Of a stretch of 64,000 bases of DNA, positions 29,638 to 48,942 are shown piece after piece. The stretch comes from Diplonema japonicum (Eukaryota > Protista > Euglenozoa: Diplonemea), in assembly GCA_964019335.1 (NCBI GenBank), contig OZ025703.1:248001-312000 (forward strand). The letters run 5' to 3'. Below the pieces are notes generated by a model. That model was not told where the DNA came from, searched no databases, and worked only from the letters and a program-made list of their open reading frames with translations. Numbering within the stretch: the stretch's first letter is position 1; every line of letters starts with the position of its first letter. The position numbers were made by a program, and so were the translations under genes.

Positions 29638-32385
29638 ATGACCGACGCCAAAGATGGGCAAGCGAGCCCTAAGAAGAAGGTCGTGAAGAAGGTGGTGAAG
29701 AGGGTTGTGAAGAAGGTGGCAAAGAAGGATGGCGATGGGCTTGTTTCGTCGATCACGAACAAGTTCGAGGAAGGAGCCACTAAGTCGCCCTCCACAGCCC
29801 CGTCCACGCCTCCCACAGAGGAGGGCGCCGCATCGCCGCAGATCAACGTGAAGGCCTTCGCCAACACCTTGGACAGTGTTGAGGTATGTACACCACTACC
29901 TACCTACCCCTACCCCTACCCTACCCTTACCCTTACCCCCACCAGGCTGGAGAAACCTCCGAAATCGAACTTAAGAAGCACGTCGTTGAGAACGATGGTT
30001 CTCCCGCCGCCAACGGCCGTGAGGTCGAAATCGATCATGAAGCCGAAAAAGCCGAAAAGGAAAAAGAACTGCAGAAGATCGCTGAGCTTGAGGAAGTCAA
30101 GGTAAGATGCTTTAAAAGGGGGGAAAAAAGGGGGGGAAACAGGCACAAAGAAGAGAAGCCAAGGCAGCAGAAGAAGCCAGAATCAAAGCCGAAGAAGAAG
30201 AAGCCGCTAGAAAGAAAGTCGAAGAAGAGGAGGCTGCTAGGATAAAGGCTGAAGAAGAGGAAGCTGCTAGGAAGAAGGCTGAAGAAGAAGAAGCGGCAAA
30301 GAAGAAGGCAGAAGAGGAAGAGGAGGCCGCCAGGATAAAGAAGGAGGAAGAGGAGGCTGCCAGGAAGAAGGAAGAGGAAGAGGCAGAGGCTGCCAGGATA
30401 AAGGCCGAAGAAGAAGAAGCCGCCAGGAAGAAGGTGGAGGAAGAGGAGGCTGCCAGGAAGAAGGCGGAGGAGGAGGCAGAGGCTGCCAAAATAAAGGCCG
30501 AAGAAGAAGCTGCTGTCAAGAAGGCCGAGGAGGAGGAAGCTGCCAGGAAGGCTGAGGAGGAAGCTGCCAGGATAAAGGCCGAAGAGGAAGAGGCTGTCAG
30601 AAAGGCCGAAGAAGAAGAAGCCGCCAGGAAGGCCGAGGAGGAAAAAGAGGCTGCCAGGAAGAAGGCTGAGGAGGAGGCTGCTAAGATTAAAGCCGAAGAG
30701 GAGGAAGCTGCCAGGATTAAAGCCGAAGAGGAGGAAGCTGCCAGGATTAAAGCCGAAGAGGAGGAAGCTGCCAGGGTTAAAGCCGAAGAAGAGGAAGCTG
30801 CTAGGATTAAAGCCGAAGAAGAGGAAGCTGCCAGGGTTAAAGCCGAAGAGGAGGAGGCTGCCAGGGTTAAAGCCGAAGAAGAGGAAGCTGCTAGGATTAA
30901 AGCCGAAGAGGAAGCTGCCACCAAGAAGGCCGAAGAAGAAGAGGCTGCTAGGGTTAAGGCCGAGGAGGAGGAAGCCGCCAGAATTAAAGCCGAAGAAGAG
31001 GAAGCCGCACGGAAAGTCGAAGAGGAGGCAGAAGCCCAAAGAATAAAGGCTGAAGAGGAAGCAAGGAAACAGGCCGAAGAAGAAGAGGCTGCAAGGAAGG
31101 CTGAAGAGGAAGAAGCCGCCCGCAAGAAGGCCGAAGAAGAAGCAGAAATCGCAAGGGTACAGGCTGAAGAGGAGGAAGCTGCCAGAAAGCAAGCTGAAGA
31201 AGAAGAAGCTGCAAGAAAGGCTATCGAAGAGGAAGCAGCAAAGAAGGCTGAAGAAGAAGAGGCAGCAAAGAAGGCCGAAGAAGACATGGAAGCAATGGAG
31301 GAAAAGGTATATTCAAACAAAAAAAAAACACACAAACCAGGAGAGGCAAGAGAGGGCAGAGGCAAGGCGCTTGAAACAGGAAGAGTTGAGGAAGGAACAG
31401 AAGGAAAAGCTGAGGCAGCGGGATCTCGAGAGGAAGAGACAAGAAGAAATAGCCAAGGAACAGAAAAAAGAGGAGCAGATCCAGAAAATGAAACTGGAGC
31501 AGGAAAAGAGGGAAATCATCGAAAAGAAGAAGAAGGAGGAAGCCGAGAGGAAGCTCGAGGAAGAACGTCAGAAAAAGTTGAGGCTGGAGGAAGATGAACG
31601 GAAACTCGAGAAGGCCAAGAAGAGATGCGAGGAGTTGAAGAAGGACAAAGCTGAGGCCAACAAAAAGGAAAGCGAGAGGCGCACATCTCTCAGAGAGGAA
31701 GAAAGGAGGAAGGAAAACGAAGCAATTAAAAAGGCTTCACAGAAGGAAAGGGATGAGAGACTCGCCAGGGAGAAGAAAAGCAAGGAGGACGAAGCCCGCA
31801 GGATAGAGGCAGCCAAGAAAGATGAGATCGATGCCAGGAAGAGAGAAGAGCAGATGCTGAAAAACCAAGCCAAGGCCGACAAGCTCGCAGAAGAGCAAAT
31901 GAGGGCGAAGGAAGAGAAACTCAGAAAACAAGAAGCAGACGCTGCAAAGGAGGCCGCAGCTAACGCGTATGGAAAGAAAAACTCAGGGGAAGAAGAAAAA
32001 AAAACAAAAAAAAACATTTCCCCCTTAACAGGAAGAAGCACAGGGAGGAGAGGGAGAGGAGAAGGTCCTCAGCAAAGACCGCGCCTGTGGAAGTCCCTAC
32101 TGATGTATGTGGTTTTTTTTTTTTTTTTTTTTGAATGGGGAAAAAAAATATTACAGTTCATCACTACTACCGGATCCCCGAAGAAGCAGGTTGCCCCGAG
32201 ACCGAGCTCCAGAAAGGCAAAGCCTGTAAAGGAAATTGCACACAAGGAGACTACCAGCGTTCAAGACTTCCAGAAATTCATGATAATGGTGTGTGGAGGA
32301 GGGGAATTTAAAAAAAAAAAAAAAAAAAAAGGGTGTTGGTGTATTCGTTGTTGTGTCCCTTGTTCTGTTCCTGCTGGCGAACTAA
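29638..32385 (+). CDS. Tail-anchored coiled-coil protein with KAEEEEAAR repeats; 7 exons (29638-29883, 29946-30101, 30143-31306, 31341-31966, 32032-32104, 32157-32288, 32332-32385)
   Basis: Six GT-AG introns of 62, 41, 34, 65, 52 and 43 nt join the track ORFs in frame; ends with hydrophobic [21 protein letters not shown]. Confidence 0.78.
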
Positions 32386-41814: not shown

Positions 41815-41887
41815 GGGGGTGTAGCTCAAATGGTAGAGCGCTCGCTTAGCATGCGAGAGGTAGAGGGATCGATGCCCTCCATCTCCA
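41815..41887 (+). tRNA. tRNA-Ala (AGC)
   Basis: Full 73-nt cloverleaf, G3:U70 identity pair, anticodon loop TTAGCAT, T-loop ATCGATG, followed by a T-run terminator. Confidence 0.95.
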
Positions 41888-41925
41888 CTTTTTTTATATT
41901 GCTAATTTCATCAGGAGATACTAAC

Positions 41926-43219: not shown

Positions 43220-43959
43220 TAATTATTTTTTAAGTCTTGTTTCTTAACCAGGAGGGGGGGAAACCCCTATTTCCCGAAACAAGAATAAAAACTGCGAGGG
43301 TAGGGTCAATACGATGTGCGGTGTGAACATGCTATTCAGGGATTTCGTAAAGTTATTCAGTGCAGGGTGGTATCAGGGGGGGCTGAAGAAGACCCCAGAT
43401 ATTTCTTATTCTTGCTTTTCTTTTGGAGGAACACCATCCGAATCTAGCCAAAAATAACTTTGCCCCGATGTTGCTCAACACACACCAAGGCCCCCCTTTA
43501 TCTTCTGTGTTTTTTCTTCTTCTTTTATTCTACAACATATCTTCTTACCTTATGCACTTGAGCCGAGAAAACACTTTAGCAGTATTTCTGGTTTTTTTTT
43601 TCCCCCTTATTATTACTATTATAGTTTTTCTTCTTTTTCTTTTTTTTTCTACTCGTGCGAATAACAGAAGACATAAAATTGTAAAAGATTTTTTTTTAAA
43701 GAGATCTACCGGTCGAATAGTGCCTTCCAAAAACTCAACCCTACGATCCGGCCCCACGACGCAAGGCTGCAACAGAAGACTCGTCTTCACCGAACAGACC
43801 ATGCGAAACCTAGGTGGCATGAGAGAGCGAGGCACGACTACACATGCAGGCACTCGCTTTTCTTTTTTCCTTCTCTTTCTTCTTTTTTTTTTCCCTTCTC
43901 CTTTTGTTTATCTCTCCTGAATTATTTCGTCTTTGTTTTGTTCACGCTTCTTCTTTCTA

Positions 43960-46900
43960 ATGATGGAGAAAAAGAAGAAAACCCCTCAGGTAAAACCATA
44001 CATGACCTCGACCCCCCTGGACCAATGCTATCTACCTGAGGGCGGGTTGAGGAGTGATCTCTCGGAGGAAACTGTGGAAAATGCAATGAAATGGATTTTG
44101 GAAGGCGAGGGGGGTGAAAAAGGGATGAAGTTTTTGGGAGAGCTGTACAGAAAGGCCGGAGGTGCGATGGGGTTAATCGGCAAAATAGAAGGGTTCTTAG
44201 ACGTGGGTTTGGACGGTACATTTTCTTCAGAGTTCTCGTTCGAGGGGGAGGTGGAGCGAGGGAACGAGTCCGATGAGGACGAACATTTTGAGGAAGATCA
44301 AGATTTTCCAAGGGGGAACTCAGTCATCGATTTTGCAGATGGAACCCCTGCACCGAACCTCGTCACCTGGCTAAAGAGACTTCCGAACTCAAACCCAGAT
44401 CTTGGTTATCGGTGTGAACACGCAACTCAACTCTTAGAAACGATCCATGTGGTTCTGAACCGAGAGCTTCCTGGGTTGAAATGCTCCCTTGAAACGAACG
44501 GCGAGGTTGAAACATGGATGGCGGCCCTGAGTTTACTCCAACCAGACGATGGCTTCCAGTGTTTCCTTGCAGGATGTTTGTACACAGCCGATCTCGTGAT
44601 TGAAAAACCAGGCGAGAAGTGGTTTTCCCCCAGCAAGAAACTGCAAACAGTGATTATAAAGGACAAAGAGATTTTAAAGGCGCACGGTATAACAGCGGAC
44701 AGTCATCGACTGCCTTTGTACTCGACAGTGAACACAGCGATGCGGGGTGTTGCGGATTTCGTGGATGGAAAGCGTGGTGGTGAGGGGAAAGTTGACATTT
44801 TCACCGATCCCGAGAGACCCCAACAGGTGCAGGTCATCAAAATCTTTCAGCCGATGATAAGACGGGTTGAGGAACTGATCCACAGATTACCGAAAAAGAT
44901 AACAATCGTCTTCAGAGGCATCAAGGGCAACATAAGCAGTCGGTACAAAGTCGGGTCCGAAGTGGTCTGGAACGCGTTTTCTTCAACGTCGGCTGAACGG
45001 GAAGCCATCTGGTCCTTCATGGGCAAGAATCGAGAAAAGAGCACCCTCTTCGTCATTATATCATCGGGTGCGGCGAGCGTTGAGTTCTGCTCCGTCTACA
45101 AAAAGGAAGAGAGGGAGTACCTCTATTCTACCAACATAAAATTCAGGGTTTCTTGGAAGCTGTCCCCGACCCTCCTCCGTATGATGGGTTGCCATTACGA
45201 CATCGTTGTTTTGAAGGAGAAATCGAGCCTGCTTCAGAAAAGCTCTGTGAAAATAGCTGCTTTAAAAGAAGTCTTGAACCAAACCATGAAGCTCTTCAAA
45301 GACTTTCTAGCAAAGTACGTGGGCGGTAAAGTCGGCGACAGAGAACGCGCACCTGCGGAGTCCACCAAGCTGGTCCTGGAGAAGATTATGAATTGGGTGG
45401 AAATCAACAAAGAAACCCGCGGACACCTGTGTCTTCTTGGTGACGGCGGGGCAGGCAAAACGTCAGCTGCCGTTGCAGTCTTGTCAAAGCTCATCAAGGA
45501 TGGTGGTGATAAGATCTTTCCAGTCTTTGTCCCATTGCCTATTTTGAAGGAAAAGTTGGTTATGCCTGGCGGGATCGATTCCTTCATCTGCGACTCTTTT
45601 GATCTGTCCCCCACGGATTTGAACTTGTTGGGGTCGACTTATGATGTGATCCTCGTTCTTGACTCACTCGACGAGGTTGGAATCGACGAACTGGCTGCAA
45701 AGATTACCAAATCAGGAGCGGCGTCCTTGCTAGAAATACACCCCTGGTGTTTTAAAAACACCACCGTGCTGTTGACGACTCGGACAGACTATGTTAAAAG
45801 GTCTGGACTGACTCCCACTCAGTTGTGTGGTACTGCGTTGGAAACCATCTTCCTGCAGCCTTTTACAGATGCTGACATTGATCAGTACGTCGGAAAATAC
45901 CTTGGGGACAAGGAGAAGACAGAGAAGGTGCTCGGGGTTTTGAGGTCAAAAAAGCTTCTGGACAAAGTACGGAACCCATTCATGTTGCACATGTTCGCGA
46001 GGTCGTGTAAGGACCAGGACTTCTCGGTGCTCCACCCAGGGAGGTTCGTGGAGAACGATGTTTACGAAACTTACTTAAAGACGGTGATACGAAATAAACA
46101 GGAAGACGTGTCGAGAGAATTGAACCAGATCCTGCACCTCGCCGAGGAAATCGCGTGCAAAATGCTCGATATGAACACATGGGAGCTCCAGCACGGTCCT
46201 GTCATCGCCGAGTTGTTAACGAACCACCACGGGATGGACCTCGGTTCGATTAAGAGTCGATTGCATAGTTTGCCTATCCGCATCGAGGACGAAGACGACG
46301 GGCAGAGTTTATTCACGTTCAGGCACAAGAGTCTTGGAGAGTACCTTGTTGCAAGACGGCTGTGGCGAGAACCCGTACAAACGTTGGTGAACCTGGTGTC
46401 GAGGAGAGCGTGGAGTAAGGACGTGCCCAACACCTTGAGATTCTTGGAGAATGAGGCGCTTCGCGACGAGGATTCAATGTCTGAAAGAGATTTAAAATGC
46501 AGGGGGGAGCTGCTGCAACTCCTCATGAAAACGAGAGACCGCAACAAATCGACCCAGAAGACAAGGATCGTCGCGTCCAACGCAATGGCGTACATGACAG
46601 CCTGTCGGTACAATTTCGAGCGCGACAACCTTTCCGGCCTCATTGTAGAAAACTCTGACTGCCGCAACTCCGTTTTCGTCCTCGCCAACTTCACATCAGC
46701 TAGGTTTGAAAACTGTTGGATGGAAGGAACCGAAATGTACAAATGTGTCCTAACCTCATCCGACTGGACGGGATCGTCCTTCGGCATTCCATTACCCCCA
46801 TTAAATTCTCATTCCGGTAAAATTACATCCATCACGATGGCACGAGGAGGCGCGCTTCTTCTGTCCACTTCTGAAGACCATACATTTCGCGCGTTCGATC

Positions 46901-48666
46901 TCAACACCGCTACACAAATTTATTGCTTACCTTGTCCGCACCCCGTGACGTCGATGGTTCTGACGCCGGACGAACGGATTGTAATCCTTTCTTATTCAAA
47001 CATTTTCGAAGTCAGATGCCGTGTGGAATTCACTTTGATCAAGAAGGTTGAAACCGAATCCAAAATATCCTGCATAGTCCTGCACGGTGGGCTGATATAC
47101 ACAGGGCACATCACTGGCACAATCTACACCTGGGCGCTCGGAAGCGGGAAACAACGGAAAAAGATAACGATGGAACAAATAGATCCGACGCATATCACCA
47201 CAATCTCTACGGGAAAGGACACTGTCCTAATCGGTTTCAAAGGAAGCCATCCCGTGATTCTCAACGGTGGCAATCCAAATCGGAAAAGCACATACACTGA
47301 TCACCATGAGCAAGGTGTGACGTGTTCAGTCCTGACCAGCGATGGGTTAAAGGCTGTCACGGGAGGAAAGGAGAAAACCGTATTCATATGGGATACAATC
47401 GAAATGAGAACAGTGGCGAGGCTTGAAGGACACTCTGCGAGCATTACAAGCATAACACTTGACCCGAGGGAGCTTCGGATCGTCTCCGGGAGTAAAGACG
47501 ATACAATCCGTGTTTGGGAGCTTATGACGGGCGTTTGTTGCCTAAAGCTCGAAGGCCACTCACGGTACATCACATCCCTGCACATCACCCCCGACGGGTC
47601 ACGTCTGGCAAGCGGGTCCAATGACCATACAATACGCATCTGGGACCTTTCCACATCAAAAGAACCCCCTCGAGTTGAAAGCCATTCTAGATGGGTGACG
47701 TGTGTCGCAGCAGATTTCTCTGAGAAGCGTATATTCTCAGGGTCCGACGACTCTACTGTTCGAGTGTGGAATGGAGTCACAGGACGCGAAATAGTCCGTT
47801 TTGACACCCCGGGGTACCCGCAAGCTTTGCACCACTCAACAGACAACCACCTGTACTGTGTAACAAACACAAAAACGATGCTGATATGGAACCTGTCCGG
47901 TATGGTGTTGGTTCGAACGGTTCAGATCGATTCCAGTTACGCGTCCTTTTCCGACAGTGCTGAGTACTTCGCCACGTTCCGCTCAGAGGCCGTGGTGGTT
48001 GTGTACCAGCAAGACAGACACTGCGAGGCCATGACTCCTATCCTTCTGCAGCACGCCTCGCCAATCTTATCCTTGATAAAGGTTTCCAGCCATGCTGATG
48101 TTGTTGTCACGTATCTTGCATCAGAGGTGTTGTGCATGTGGGGGAAATGGAAAGGTGGGGGTGTTAACTCTCCGCAGCCACCTGTCTTGGTTGCGGTGAA
48201 GAACGTACTTTCACTTGACACATCAAGGAACGGTGGTGTAGCTGTTGTAGGGTGCAAGTCTGAGATCTGTTTGTATGACACTAGGTCGGGAGCGACGCGG
48301 CACCGATTCCCTGTAGAGCTGACTAGTGTGGTTGCGGTGAAGATATCAGACTGTGAGAAGATAGTCGTCAGCGGTTGTTCGAACAAGACAGTTTTGATTT
48401 TCAACGCCACCACAGGCACTGCTACCCACACCCTGTGTGGAAACTCCGATACCATCACAGGCATAGCCCTGTCACCTACTTCTATTGTAACGGCGTCAAA
48501 AGACAAGACCATTAGGGTGTACCGCTTGGTCTCTCGAGGCCGCGGCGGGTCGCAAAACACAATGGCATCTATCCTCACCATCGGGGAACGAAACACCTGT
48601 GTCCGAACGTTTTCTTGCATTGGAGCGAACATGGCCAAGCCTGACAGCAGGGCGAGGTTGTTGTAA
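43960..48666 (+). CDS. NLR-like STAND protein: ADP-ribosyltransferase domain + NACHT NTPase + pentapeptide-like repeats + WD40 repeats
   Basis: ART motifs LYT, LY..VN.AMR, VFRG, FSSTS, EREYL; Walker A GDGGAGKT; Walker B LVLDSLDE; LLTTR; NP.ML; F.HKSLGEY; multiple GH...WD repeats. Start codon uncertain. Confidence 0.88.
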   Translation: MMEKKKKTPQVKPYMTSTPLDQCYLPEGGLRSDLSEETVENAMKWILEGEGGEKGMKFLGELYRKAGGAMGLIGKIEGFLDVGLDGTFSSEFSFEGEVERGNESDEDEHFEEDQDFPRGNSVIDFADGTPAPNLVTWLKRLPNSNPDLGYRCEHATQLLETIHVVLNRELPGLKCSLETNGEVETWMAALSLLQPDDGFQCFLAGCLYTADLVIEKPGEKWFSPSKKLQTVIIKDKEILKAHGITADSHRLPLYSTVNTAMRGVADFVDGKRGGEGKVDIFTDPERPQQVQVIKIFQPMIRRVEELIHRLPKKITIVFRGIKGNISSRYKVGSEVVWNAFSSTSAEREAIWSFMGKNREKSTLFVIISSGAASVEFCSVYKKEEREYLYSTNIKFRVSWKLSPTLLRMMGCHYDIVVLKEKSSLLQKSSVKIAALKEVLNQTMKLFKDFLAKYVGGKVGDRERAPAESTKLVLEKIMNWVEINKETRGHLCLLGDGGAGKTSAAVAVLSKLIKDGGDKIFPVFVPLPILKEKLVMPGGIDSFICDSFDLSPTDLNLLGSTYDVILVLDSLDEVGIDELAAKITKSGAASLLEIHPWCFKNTTVLLTTRTDYVKRSGLTPTQLCGTALETIFLQPFTDADIDQYVGKYLGDKEKTEKVLGVLRSKKLLDKVRNPFMLHMFARSCKDQDFSVLHPGRFVENDVYETYLKTVIRNKQEDVSRELNQILHLAEEIACKMLDMNTWELQHGPVIAELLTNHHGMDLGSIKSRLHSLPIRIEDEDDGQSLFTFRHKSLGEYLVARRLWREPVQTLVNLVSRRAWSKDVPNTLRFLENEALRDEDSMSERDLKCRGELLQLLMKTRDRNKSTQKTRIVASNAMAYMTACRYNFERDNLSGLIVENSDCRNSVFVLANFTSARFENCWMEGTEMYKCVLTSSDWTGSSFGIPLPPLNSHSGKITSITMARGGALLLSTSEDHTFRAFDLNTATQIYCLPCPHPVTSMVLTPDERIVILSYSNIFEVRCRVEFTLIKKVETESKISCIVLHGGLIYTGHITGTIYTWALGSGKQRKKITMEQIDPTHITTISTGKDTVLIGFKGSHPVILNGGNPNRKSTYTDHHEQGVTCSVLTSDGLKAVTGGKEKTVFIWDTIEMRTVARLEGHSASITSITLDPRELRIVSGSKDDTIRVWELMTGVCCLKLEGHSRYITSLHITPDGSRLASGSNDHTIRIWDLSTSKEPPRVESHSRWVTCVAADFSEKRIFSGSDDSTVRVWNGVTGREIVRFDTPGYPQALHHSTDNHLYCVTNTKTMLIWNLSGMVLVRTVQIDSSYASFSDSAEYFATFRSEAVVVVYQQDRHCEAMTPILLQHASPILSLIKVSSHADVVVTYLASEVLCMWGKWKGGGVNSPQPPVLVAVKNVLSLDTSRNGGVAVVGCKSEICLYDTRSGATRHRFPVELTSVVAVKISDCEKIVVSGCSNKTVLIFNATTGTATHTLCGNSDTITGIALSPTSIVTASKDKTIRVYRLVSRGRGGSQNTMASILTIGERNTCVRTFSCIGANMAKPDSRARLL

Positions 48667-48942
48667 AAAAAGAAAAAAAAAGAAAACACACGAAAGAAGA
48701 AAGAGAAAAGGCCTGTATAAGGCCCCGTCCACATGTGCTTGTTTCTCCCCTCTCCCCTTTTTTTCTTCTTCGAGCGAATGACGTTCTCCGTAGCCCTTGT
48801 TTCATTTCTTCCCCCCCCCCCCCTCTTTGACACCGTCTATGTTTAGAAAAAGAAGAAGAAAGAAAACCAGAAATAACAAACAAACACAAAAGTGAAGGGA
48901 AAAGGGGGAAAAGAAAATGCACCACCGGACAATTATTCAAAA

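Follow-up and report, generated by a model that had tools for sequence, protein, structure and literature searches.

A candidate NLR-like switch of Diplonema japonicum with a predicted ADP-ribosyltransferase effector domain

Introduction

The stretch of DNA analysed here, from the marine protist Diplonema japonicum and referred to as the window, comprises 64,000 nucleotides (assembly GCA_964019335.1, contig OZ025703.1, positions 248,001 to 312,000 of the forward strand) and contains at 43960-48666 a long open reading frame (ORF) that a sequence-only reading had described as a receptor similar to the nucleotide-binding, leucine-rich repeat (NLR) proteins, with an apparently intact ADP-ribosyltransferase (ART) domain as effector. 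The locus raises the question of what such a protein would do: is it a nucleotide-gated switch with ADP-ribosylation as its output, and does it serve conflict or a task of ordinary cell biology? The results given below establish the architecture of the protein and show that its two enzymatic cores are intact. With a probability that we put at roughly 0.55, the gene encodes a cytosolic, NLR-like switch of the STAND class (signal transduction ATPases that have numerous domains) with an ART output, the setting of which is most likely conflict.

Results

Architecture of the ORF

The ORF is a single open frame at 43933-48666 of the plus strand with the first ATG at 43960, from which 1568 codons are open, confirming that no introns are needed to connect the modules. 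The four motifs on which the sequence-only reading was built were recovered exactly, at 44908 (V-F-R-G), 44977 (F-S-S-T-S), 45109 (E-R-E) and 45439 (G-D-G-G-A-G-K-T). The order of ART, NACHT, pentapeptide and WD40 modules that it had proposed was borne out by Pfam, with the ART, NACHT and pentapeptide (PF00805) families above their cut-offs and WD40 at 142.6 bits, scores well outside what chance would give. The features are listed in window coordinates with the evidence that places them.

43960-48666, plus strand: complete intron-less ORF encoding ART, NACHT, pentapeptide and WD40 modules (1568 aa and stop)
43960-44316, plus strand: N-terminal ~119 aa without an assigned domain (no Pfam family in the stretch)
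44317-45234, plus strand: ART domain of the arginine-serine-glutamate (R-S-E) clade including its N-terminal helical part, aa ~120-425 (Pfam, AlphaFold2, Foldseek, VIA-align)
44914-44916, plus strand: Arg319, the R of R-S-E, in V-F-R-G (44908-44919, aa 317-320)
44983-44991, plus strand: Ser342-Thr343-Ser344, the S-T-S of F-S-S-T-S (44977-44991, aa 340-344)
45109-45117, plus strand: Glu384-Arg-Glu386, the ExE catalytic motif (aa 384-386)
45427-46602, plus strand: NACHT module with nucleotide-binding, helical and winged-helix domains, aa ~490-881 (Pfam, AlphaFold2, Foldseek)
45439-45462, plus strand: Walker A, G-D-G-G-A-G-K-T, aa 494-501 (motif coordinates)
45652-45675, plus strand: Walker B, L-V-L-D-S-L-D-E (motif coordinates)
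45775-45783, plus strand: sensor Arg608 in T-T-R, located 3' of Walker B
46318-46326, plus strand: winged-helix His789 in F-R-H (motif coordinates)
46612-46764, plus strand: short pentapeptide-repeat beta-solenoid linker, aa ~885-935 (PF00805, AlphaFold2 strands)
46801-48663, plus strand: WD40 beta-propeller array, aa ~948-1568 (PF00400)

The N-terminus of the product is hydrophilic as judged by eye. In relatives the N-terminal stretch is often occupied by ankyrin repeats, Ank families having been found for several homologs.

The ART domain

Pfam was run piecewise on the N-terminal 980 residues, the whole-protein scan being dominated by WD40 and propeller models. The ART family PF01129 matched aa 314-398 with 27.7 bits, or 29.5 when a shorter cut-out was scanned, its cut-off being 22.3; PF03496 (ADPrib_exo_Tox) was below its cut-off (12.1-13.9 vs 23.4). 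A phmmer search against the sequences of the Protein Data Bank (PDB) matched a single protein, Vis, an arginine ART of Vibrio (E 0.0025), the Y-R-G, S-T-S and E-x-E of which align to V-F-R-G, S-S-T-S and E-R-E of the query. Sixteen sequences were aligned over aa 120-445, including two paralogs from the same genome and 13 homologs of 19-46% identity that were chosen by us from the match lists and are not the full set. Residues R319, S342, T343, E384 and E386 were invariant in 16/16, as were N258 and R262 of the upstream helix.

The AlphaFold2 model built on this alignment had a mean predicted local distance difference test score (pLDDT) of 86.8 and a predicted template modelling score (pTM) of 0.85. 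Foldseek returned 127 matches to the PDB at E<=0.001, and every listed match was an R-S-E-type ART or an ART-fold effector, among them Vis, HopU1, Tre1, ExoS/ExoT, C3, SpvB, Certhrax, VahC and XopAI. Structural comparison with VIA-align gave Z 15.3 for Tre1 (6drh; 183 residues aligned, root-mean-square deviation 2.8), Z 14.8 for rat ART2.2 (1gxy; 200 residues aligned, covering model residues 1-305) and Z 14.4 for HopU1, with Z>=8 in 125 of 884 chains. The model thus shows the N-terminal domain to be of the ART fold with an intact R-S-ExE triad, in agreement with the apparently intact domain claimed from the sequence. In ARTs, ExE marks enzymes that modify arginine, and QxE those that use other acceptors. 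Since the motif here is ExE, an arginine-directed transferase is the likeliest activity predicted from the sequence.

NACHT module, pentapeptide linker and WD40 array

The NACHT family PF05729 matched aa 490-650 with 33.9 bits against a cut-off of 26.7. In an alignment of 32 NACHT sequences, also chosen by us from the match lists rather than being the full set, G499 and K500 of Walker A, D571 and E572 of Walker B and the sensor R608 were invariant in 32/32, and G494, G497, T501 and H789 were conserved in at least 90%. The AlphaFold2 model of aa 440-960 had a pLDDT of 89.9, and Foldseek returned 370 matches at E<=0.001, led by NOD2, NLRP14, NLRP9, NLRP2, NLRC4 and NLRP3 (E 1e-11 to 1e-8, 10-15% identity). 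A phmmer search with the NACHT region against the PDB sequences gave chance-level rows only (best E 0.29). The model confirms that the module has an animal-NLR-type fold in which the nucleotide-handling residues are all predicted to be in place.

The same model ends at its C-terminus in five short strands with a 10-residue spacing, as expected of a short pentapeptide solenoid. The pentapeptide family PF00805 scored 23.8 bits against a cut-off of 20.2 at aa 897-924, and PF13599, at 21.5 bits, was below its cut-off. WD40 (PF00400) was matched over six stretches, besides many other beta-propeller family models that include the TEP1 propeller families PF25047 (95.5 vs 89 bits) and PF25048 (65.2 vs 32 bits). 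The length of the array fits roughly 14 blades.

Relatives and family spread

A full-length search returned 14 proteins at E<=0.001, of which 11 were 34-38% identical and 1606-2028 aa long. None came from NCBI or UniRef sources, so the annotated trypanosomatid proteomes seem to be without the family at this search sensitivity. An exhaustive search of representatives with the ART region gave 273 proteins at E<=0.001, of which 38 passed E<=1e-10 and 11 passed E<=1e-30; a stored subset of 160 was used for family counts, and in 77 of these the NACHT region of the query was also matched, downstream of the ART match. The catalytic motifs were counted in 150 of 159 ART-match proteins, nine being dropped as not spanning the catalytic core. 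Among the ART-NACHT proteins 67/75 carry R-S-E-x-E, 7/75 R-S-Q-x-E and 1/75 a degenerate motif; R-S-E-x-E is likewise present in 70/75 proteins without a NACHT match. Over the aligned ART cores the position of R319 is Arg in 147/151, that of S342 Ser in 150/151, that of E384 Glu in 140/151 and Gln in 9/151, and that of E386 Glu in 149/151.

The named diplonemid sources of ART-NACHT proteins are Lacrimia lanifica, Namystynia karyoxenos, Flectonema neradi, Artemidia motanka and one labelled 'Hpha', taken here to be Hemistasia. Further members come from Papus ankaliazontas, a prokinetoplastid, and from one transcriptome entry of Pigoraptor chileana (P0091), the sole named source outside the euglenozoans. 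P0091 groups with a Lacrimia protein inside a starred clade of the tree; Pigoraptor cultures are fed kinetoplastid prey, and P0091 may therefore be carried over from prey. In one metagenome protein (P0013) the NACHT region was matched and the ART region was not.

Tree position, copy number and divergence of the sensor

In this genome the ART query matches 13 places, and three of the ORFs also contain NACHT: the gene studied here, C102 (1766 aa from the first Met) and C77 (1185 aa). The frame of the C77 paralog (L015:3037-6591, minus strand, equal to G000:C77:93536-97090) ends at 1185 aa and WD40-like sequence goes on downstream in another frame; a frameshift or an assembly error could account for this, or the downstream part could be a separate gene.

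A maximum-likelihood tree (quick search, SH-aLRT support only) was computed for 73 of 163 sequences, namely the 160 stored relatives and the three ORFs of this genome. Rows were admitted when the ART core was matched, a NACHT match lay no more than 600 residues downstream and the span was at least 350 residues. The studied gene is placed on a branch of length 0.72 within a supported clade of 29 rows, weakly paired with a protein from the European Nucleotide Archive (ENA), and its closest relative is 42% identical over 518 tree columns. C102 and C77 form an 83%-identical pair in the opposite half of the tree. This position indicates that the gene is neither a slowly evolving one-to-one ortholog nor a member of a local expansion. 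For comparison, one HSP90 of the same genome shares 97-98% identity with EukProt transcripts of Diplonema japonicum, which places the host in Diplonema, 86-89% with HSP90 of Flectonema, Rhynchopus and ENA diplonemid-like assemblies, and 72-75% with the listed named euglenid and trypanosomatid proteins. Given the divergence relative to HSP90, the multi-copy state of the family and its lineage-specific expansions, the gene does not qualify as a conserved, single-copy ortholog with a housekeeping task, a finding that would have refuted the sequence-only reading.

One such expansion, in another (ENA) assembly, comprises six recent paralogs (P0004, P0006-P0009 and P0011), four of which lie on one contig of 798,917 bases. 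In 100-column windows these are 79-98% identical from ART to NACHT and 56-68% in the WD40 part. Pairwise BLASTP gave 78-94% for the N-terminal, ART and NACHT regions and 32-79% for WD40. The WD40 part was the less identical one in 15/15 pairs, a difference that shifts of repeat register could inflate. Overall, the ART-NACHT family is old, multi-copy and fast-evolving, and occurs in diplonemids and in one or more prokinetoplastids.

ART fusions and NACHT chassis elsewhere in the genome

PF01129 scored above its cut-off at no fewer than 49 places genome-wide, many of them ORFs of ~1000 aa clustered on contigs C96, C91, C66 and C49, a pattern suggestive of a large expansion of R-S-E ART domains in this lineage. 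Of the 12 other scanned ORFs matched by the ART query, 11 were confirmed by Pfam; they include the two ART-NACHT paralogs, two ART-tubulin ORFs, two ART-ankyrin ORFs and one ORF combining WGR, PARP_reg and ART. Joining ART domains to other modules is thus common in this lineage. In the ART-tubulin ORFs the tubulin is C-terminal and ~590-770 open codons separate it from the ART domain. In the WGR ORF no PARP catalytic family was found at E<=0.01.

L025:1861-6900 (G000:C13:363560-368599), minus strand: ART-tubulin ORF, Tubulin 130.5 bits and Tubulin_C
L022:3075-8384 (G000:C15:697074-702383), plus strand: ART-tubulin ORF, tubulin GTPase domain 131.2 bits
L019:4695-6446 (G000:C73:72694-74445), minus strand: WGR, PARP regulatory domain and PF01129-type ART (38.8 bits), 584 aa
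G000:C103:63257-69577 and 71119-78561 (L030-L033): tandem NACHT genes, 2115 and 2487 codons open

The NACHT family PF05729 was found at six places in this genome, which are the three ART-NACHT genes, the two tandem ORFs on C103 and a NACHT-WD40 gene on C12 whose NACHT match is sub-threshold. The C103 genes encode NACHT, pentapeptide and WD40 modules preceded by long N-terminal regions that have no ART domain, and in the second an OTU-like stretch occupies aa 845-918 (28.4 bits vs a cut-off of 23.3). These genes indicate that the N-terminal part on the NACHT-pentapeptide-WD40 chassis varies, as it does in other STAND families. Of the genome-wide paralogs and N-terminal domain swaps that the sequence-only reading had envisaged, swaps were thus found in the two C103 genes, and the paralogs came to two distant ones, the gene being the one copy of its subclade.

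Genomic context

The assembly comprises 62.5 Mb in 132 contigs. The proportion of G and C at third codon positions (GC3) is 0.588 in the ORF and 0.48-0.61 in five neighbouring genes, and the long ORFs of the window are nearly all on the plus strand. The scanned neighbours are eukaryotic genes of an ordinary kind encoding a polycystin-type channel, kinases, bestrophin, an IQ protein and a leucine-rich repeat (LRR) protein; a BspA-type LRR gene lies immediately upstream of the ORF and a C2-domain gene immediately downstream. A tRNA-Ala (AGC) gene is located at 41815-41888 between protein-coding genes, just 5' of the BspA-type LRR gene. Elsewhere in the window, the 2-kb bin at 30001-32000 has a GC skew of 0.391 and an AT skew of 0.698, marking a strongly purine-rich strand, and ORFs overlap there on both strands.

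Discussion

Proposed mechanism and role

Gated ADP-ribosylation is, by analogy with other STAND proteins, a well-founded inference for the mechanism. The WD40 array would keep the protein closed and ADP-bound until binding of a ligand lifts the closed state. The NACHT module would then exchange nucleotide and oligomerise, through which the ART domains would be freed or clustered. These could move ADP-ribose from nicotinamide adenine dinucleotide (NAD+) to a target, with arginine the likely acceptor, or might merely consume NAD+. The cytoskeleton could be a target, the ART-tubulin fusions of the same genome being a hint; Tre1, the closest solved fold, reportedly modifies the tubulin relative FtsZ. 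The most likely setting is conflict, in which the protein would defend against viruses, keep bacteria or endosymbionts in check or take part in regulated cell death. Such a conflict or immune role has about even odds and is plausible mainly because the gene diverges fast, variation in the related expansion is biased towards the sensor and effectors are swapped on the chassis. A more specific, tentative scheme would make an arginine-directed ADP-ribosyltransferase the executioner, with sensing by a rapidly diversifying WD40 array leading through NACHT oligomerisation to toxin-like modification of host or invader proteins.

Several results weigh against a role in conflict or against use of the gene at all. 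The subclade of the gene has one copy in this genome, without near-identical siblings; clustering with similar genes was not seen among the scanned neighbours in the window; and the C102/C77 pair shows no extra divergence in the WD40 part. Tandem Repeats Finder (minimum score 30) detected no DNA-level tandem repeat within the ORF, its only rows being a short poly-A at 48665-48686 that begins at the stop codon. The WD40 repeats are thus not homogenised, unlike those of the fungal NWD/HET-E proteins. A PADLOC search matched none of its defence families. Since ART domains, numerous in this genome as described above, are joined with tubulin, ankyrin and PARP modules, an ART fusion alone is not a pointer to immunity. 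The searched collections contained D. japonicum transcriptome proteins, yet no close match to the gene was found there. The best matches were at most 48% identical to the ART region, at most 38% to aa 1-900 and at most 41% to the last 600 aa, and the last search, made for transcript fragments, returned generic WD40 proteins only. Expression is therefore unsupported.

Part of this evidence bears on the explanation that the protein is an endogenous regulatory switch, a STAND-gated ADP-ribosylating writer in ordinary cell biology such as control of the cytoskeleton or organelles. With at least 49 PF01129 places in this genome, R-S-E ARTs seem to be widely used as regulatory modules in diplonemids, and the fusions with tubulin and ankyrin (two ORFs each) and with WGR and PARP_reg, the single copy in the subclade and the ordinary neighbourhood fit such a role. 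Animal NACHT-WD40 proteins such as TEP1 occur in housekeeping particles, according to the accessible part of 10.64898/2026.09.21.753143. A regulatory role nevertheless appears rather unlikely, if a serious contender, given the fast divergence (best identity 42% vs 86-89% for HSP90), the expansions in other genomes in which WD40 diverges while ART-NACHT stays close, and a tree without a visible one-to-one ortholog set. It is more doubtful that the output is NAD+ depletion, as in the TIR and TeTIR effectors of STAND proteins, rather than protein ADP-ribosylation. Members of the ART superfamily can be NADases, as stated in the accessible part of 10.64898/2026.10.19.760177, and TIR-like NADases occupy the equivalent position in NWD1, NWD2 and TEP1 (10.64898/2026.09.21.753143, accessible part). 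A rotifer cluster with NACHT, TIR_2 and ART, found in the ESM-Atlas at 0.84 and below the trust line of 0.9, points the same way. On the other hand, the closest solved structures are the protein-modifying transferases Tre1, ART2.2, HopU1 and ExoS, and ExE, kept in 67/75 ART-NACHT proteins, is typical of arginine-directed transferases.

That the ORF is a silent relic, still open and no longer expressed or used, is improbable. No near-identical transcript-derived protein was found with the ART region, aa 1-900 or the last 600 aa, and the distant paralog C77 ends early, with WD40-like sequence in another frame; but long transcripts that are weakly expressed or inducible are often absent from de novo transcriptomes, 1568 codons are open, all family-invariant catalytic and nucleotide-binding residues are kept and both AlphaFold2 models are confident. 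Contaminating DNA or a recent bacterial transfer is very improbable and was rejected on gene composition and genomic context. Bacterial toxins are the best-known carriers of the ART fold, and cyanobacterial NACHT-pentapeptide proteins were among the ESM-Atlas leads (0.83-0.86). Against a foreign source, the gene lies in a same-strand array of eukaryotic genes within the 62.5-Mb assembly, its GC3 resembles that of its neighbours and all named relatives are eukaryotic except one metagenome protein. Furthermore, scans of 185,579 prokaryotic species genomes with the NACHT-pentapeptide part and the metagenome homolog P0013 as queries confirmed no relative, a method that detects close relatives only. 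An ancient bacterial origin of individual modules is possible.

Significance

To our knowledge, almost nothing is known of defence or symbiont policing in free-living protists outside fungi, plants and animals. The NLR outputs so far are polymerisation of adaptors, pore formation and the NADase activity of TIR and TeTIR domains. If the favoured reading of an ART-bearing switch in conflict holds, ADP-ribosylation would be added to these, and an innate-immunity or symbiont-control mechanism would have an effector chemistry undescribed for any NLR. Holosporales endosymbionts have been reported in D. japonicum (10.64898/2026.01.29.702485, accessible part). With both modules present in 77 of the 160 stored relatives, the family is of a size that permits evolutionary tests. 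The idea is also testable in the related diplonemid Paradiplonema papillatum, since this species is genetically tractable (PMC12621601, accessible part). Were the role regulatory, the protein would even so count among the rare protein-modifying enzymes that are gated by a STAND module.

Comparison with known systems

The logic of effector, NACHT and repeats is familiar. In the literature searched, neither an intact toxin-type ART as NLR effector, nor an R-S-E ART fused to NACHT, nor NLR-like genes of diplonemids were found described, and the view that the layout was undescribed in euglenozoans stood up, no describing paper having been found; supplementary tables may list such architectures. 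The accessible main text of PMC10161547 contains no mention of nacht, adp-ribosyl, wd40, nlr or immun, and its supplementary tables may differ. The ESM-Atlas leads, namely the cyanobacterial NACHT-pentapeptide proteins and the rotifer cluster, are all below the trust line. They suggest that a pairing of ART and NACHT may exist elsewhere in databases, undiscussed.

The bacterial NACHT and Avs-type antiphage STAND proteins share with the Diplonema protein the logic of a sensor, a STAND NTPase and an enzymatic effector, and a weak NCBIfam match to EruA (E 6.1e-5) was obtained. Membership of EruA was rejected at 21.3 bits against an NCBIfam cut-off of 1000. Membership of a known antiphage NACHT system was rejected likewise, PADLOC giving no match and EruA being far below threshold. 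No ART effector is named in the main texts searched on these systems. The term 'adp-ribosyl' is absent from PMC9815663, 10.1101/2022.07.19.500537 and PMC13581612, the supplementary tables of which may include such architectures.

The comparison with the fungal HET-E/NWD receptors in the sequence-only reading holds for the layout of effector, NACHT and WD40 and does not extend further. The paralog expansions with variable WD40 are a second likeness, seen in relatives of the gene elsewhere. However, the Diplonema protein has no HET or other fungal effector, the N-terminal part having ART only, and its WD40 units are not near-identical tandem repeats. Membership of HET-E/NWD was rejected on the missing HET domain and the missing repeat homogenisation.

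Animal NLRs (NOD2, NLRP3, NLRP9, NLRP14 and NLRC4) are the best fold matches of the NACHT model, and their Walker A, Walker B, sensor Arg and winged-helix His are present in the Diplonema protein. The two differ in the sensor, which is WD40 and not LRR, and in the effector, which is an enzyme and not a CARD or PYD adaptor. Pfam scans of the protein reported no LRR family of the kind that marks the C-terminus of a strict NLR; the term NLR-like is used because the C-terminus is WD40 and LRR were not found.

The R-S-E mono-ADP-ribosyltransferases (Tre1, ART2.2, HopU1, ExoS/ExoT and Vis) resemble the ART domain in fold (Z 12-15) and in the aligned R, S-T-S and E-x-E. In contrast to these, the Diplonema domain is embedded in a 1568-aa STAND protein, with only 16-21% identity, and the protein is probably neither a secreted toxin nor an ecto-enzyme anchored by glycosylphosphatidylinositol. 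Membership of the vertebrate ecto-ARTs (ARTC) was rejected on the N-terminus, hydrophilic by eye, and on the location of the domain inside a NACHT-WD40 protein; orthology to the ecto-ARTs is unlikely.

The nearest printed analogue of the gene, going by the accessible part of 10.64898/2026.09.21.753143, is the TeTIR-NACHT-WD40 group, with NWD1, NWD2 and TEP1 among its members and a TIR-like NADase N-terminal of NACHT. In both an NAD+-using enzyme domain stands directly upstream of NACHT and is followed by WD40 propellers, and the Diplonema protein passes the cut-offs of the TEP1 propeller models PF25047 and PF25048. The Diplonema protein differs from the group in its effector, which is of the R-S-ExE ART fold and not TIR-like, in the pentapeptide solenoid between NACHT and WD40, and in its host, a diplonemid protist.

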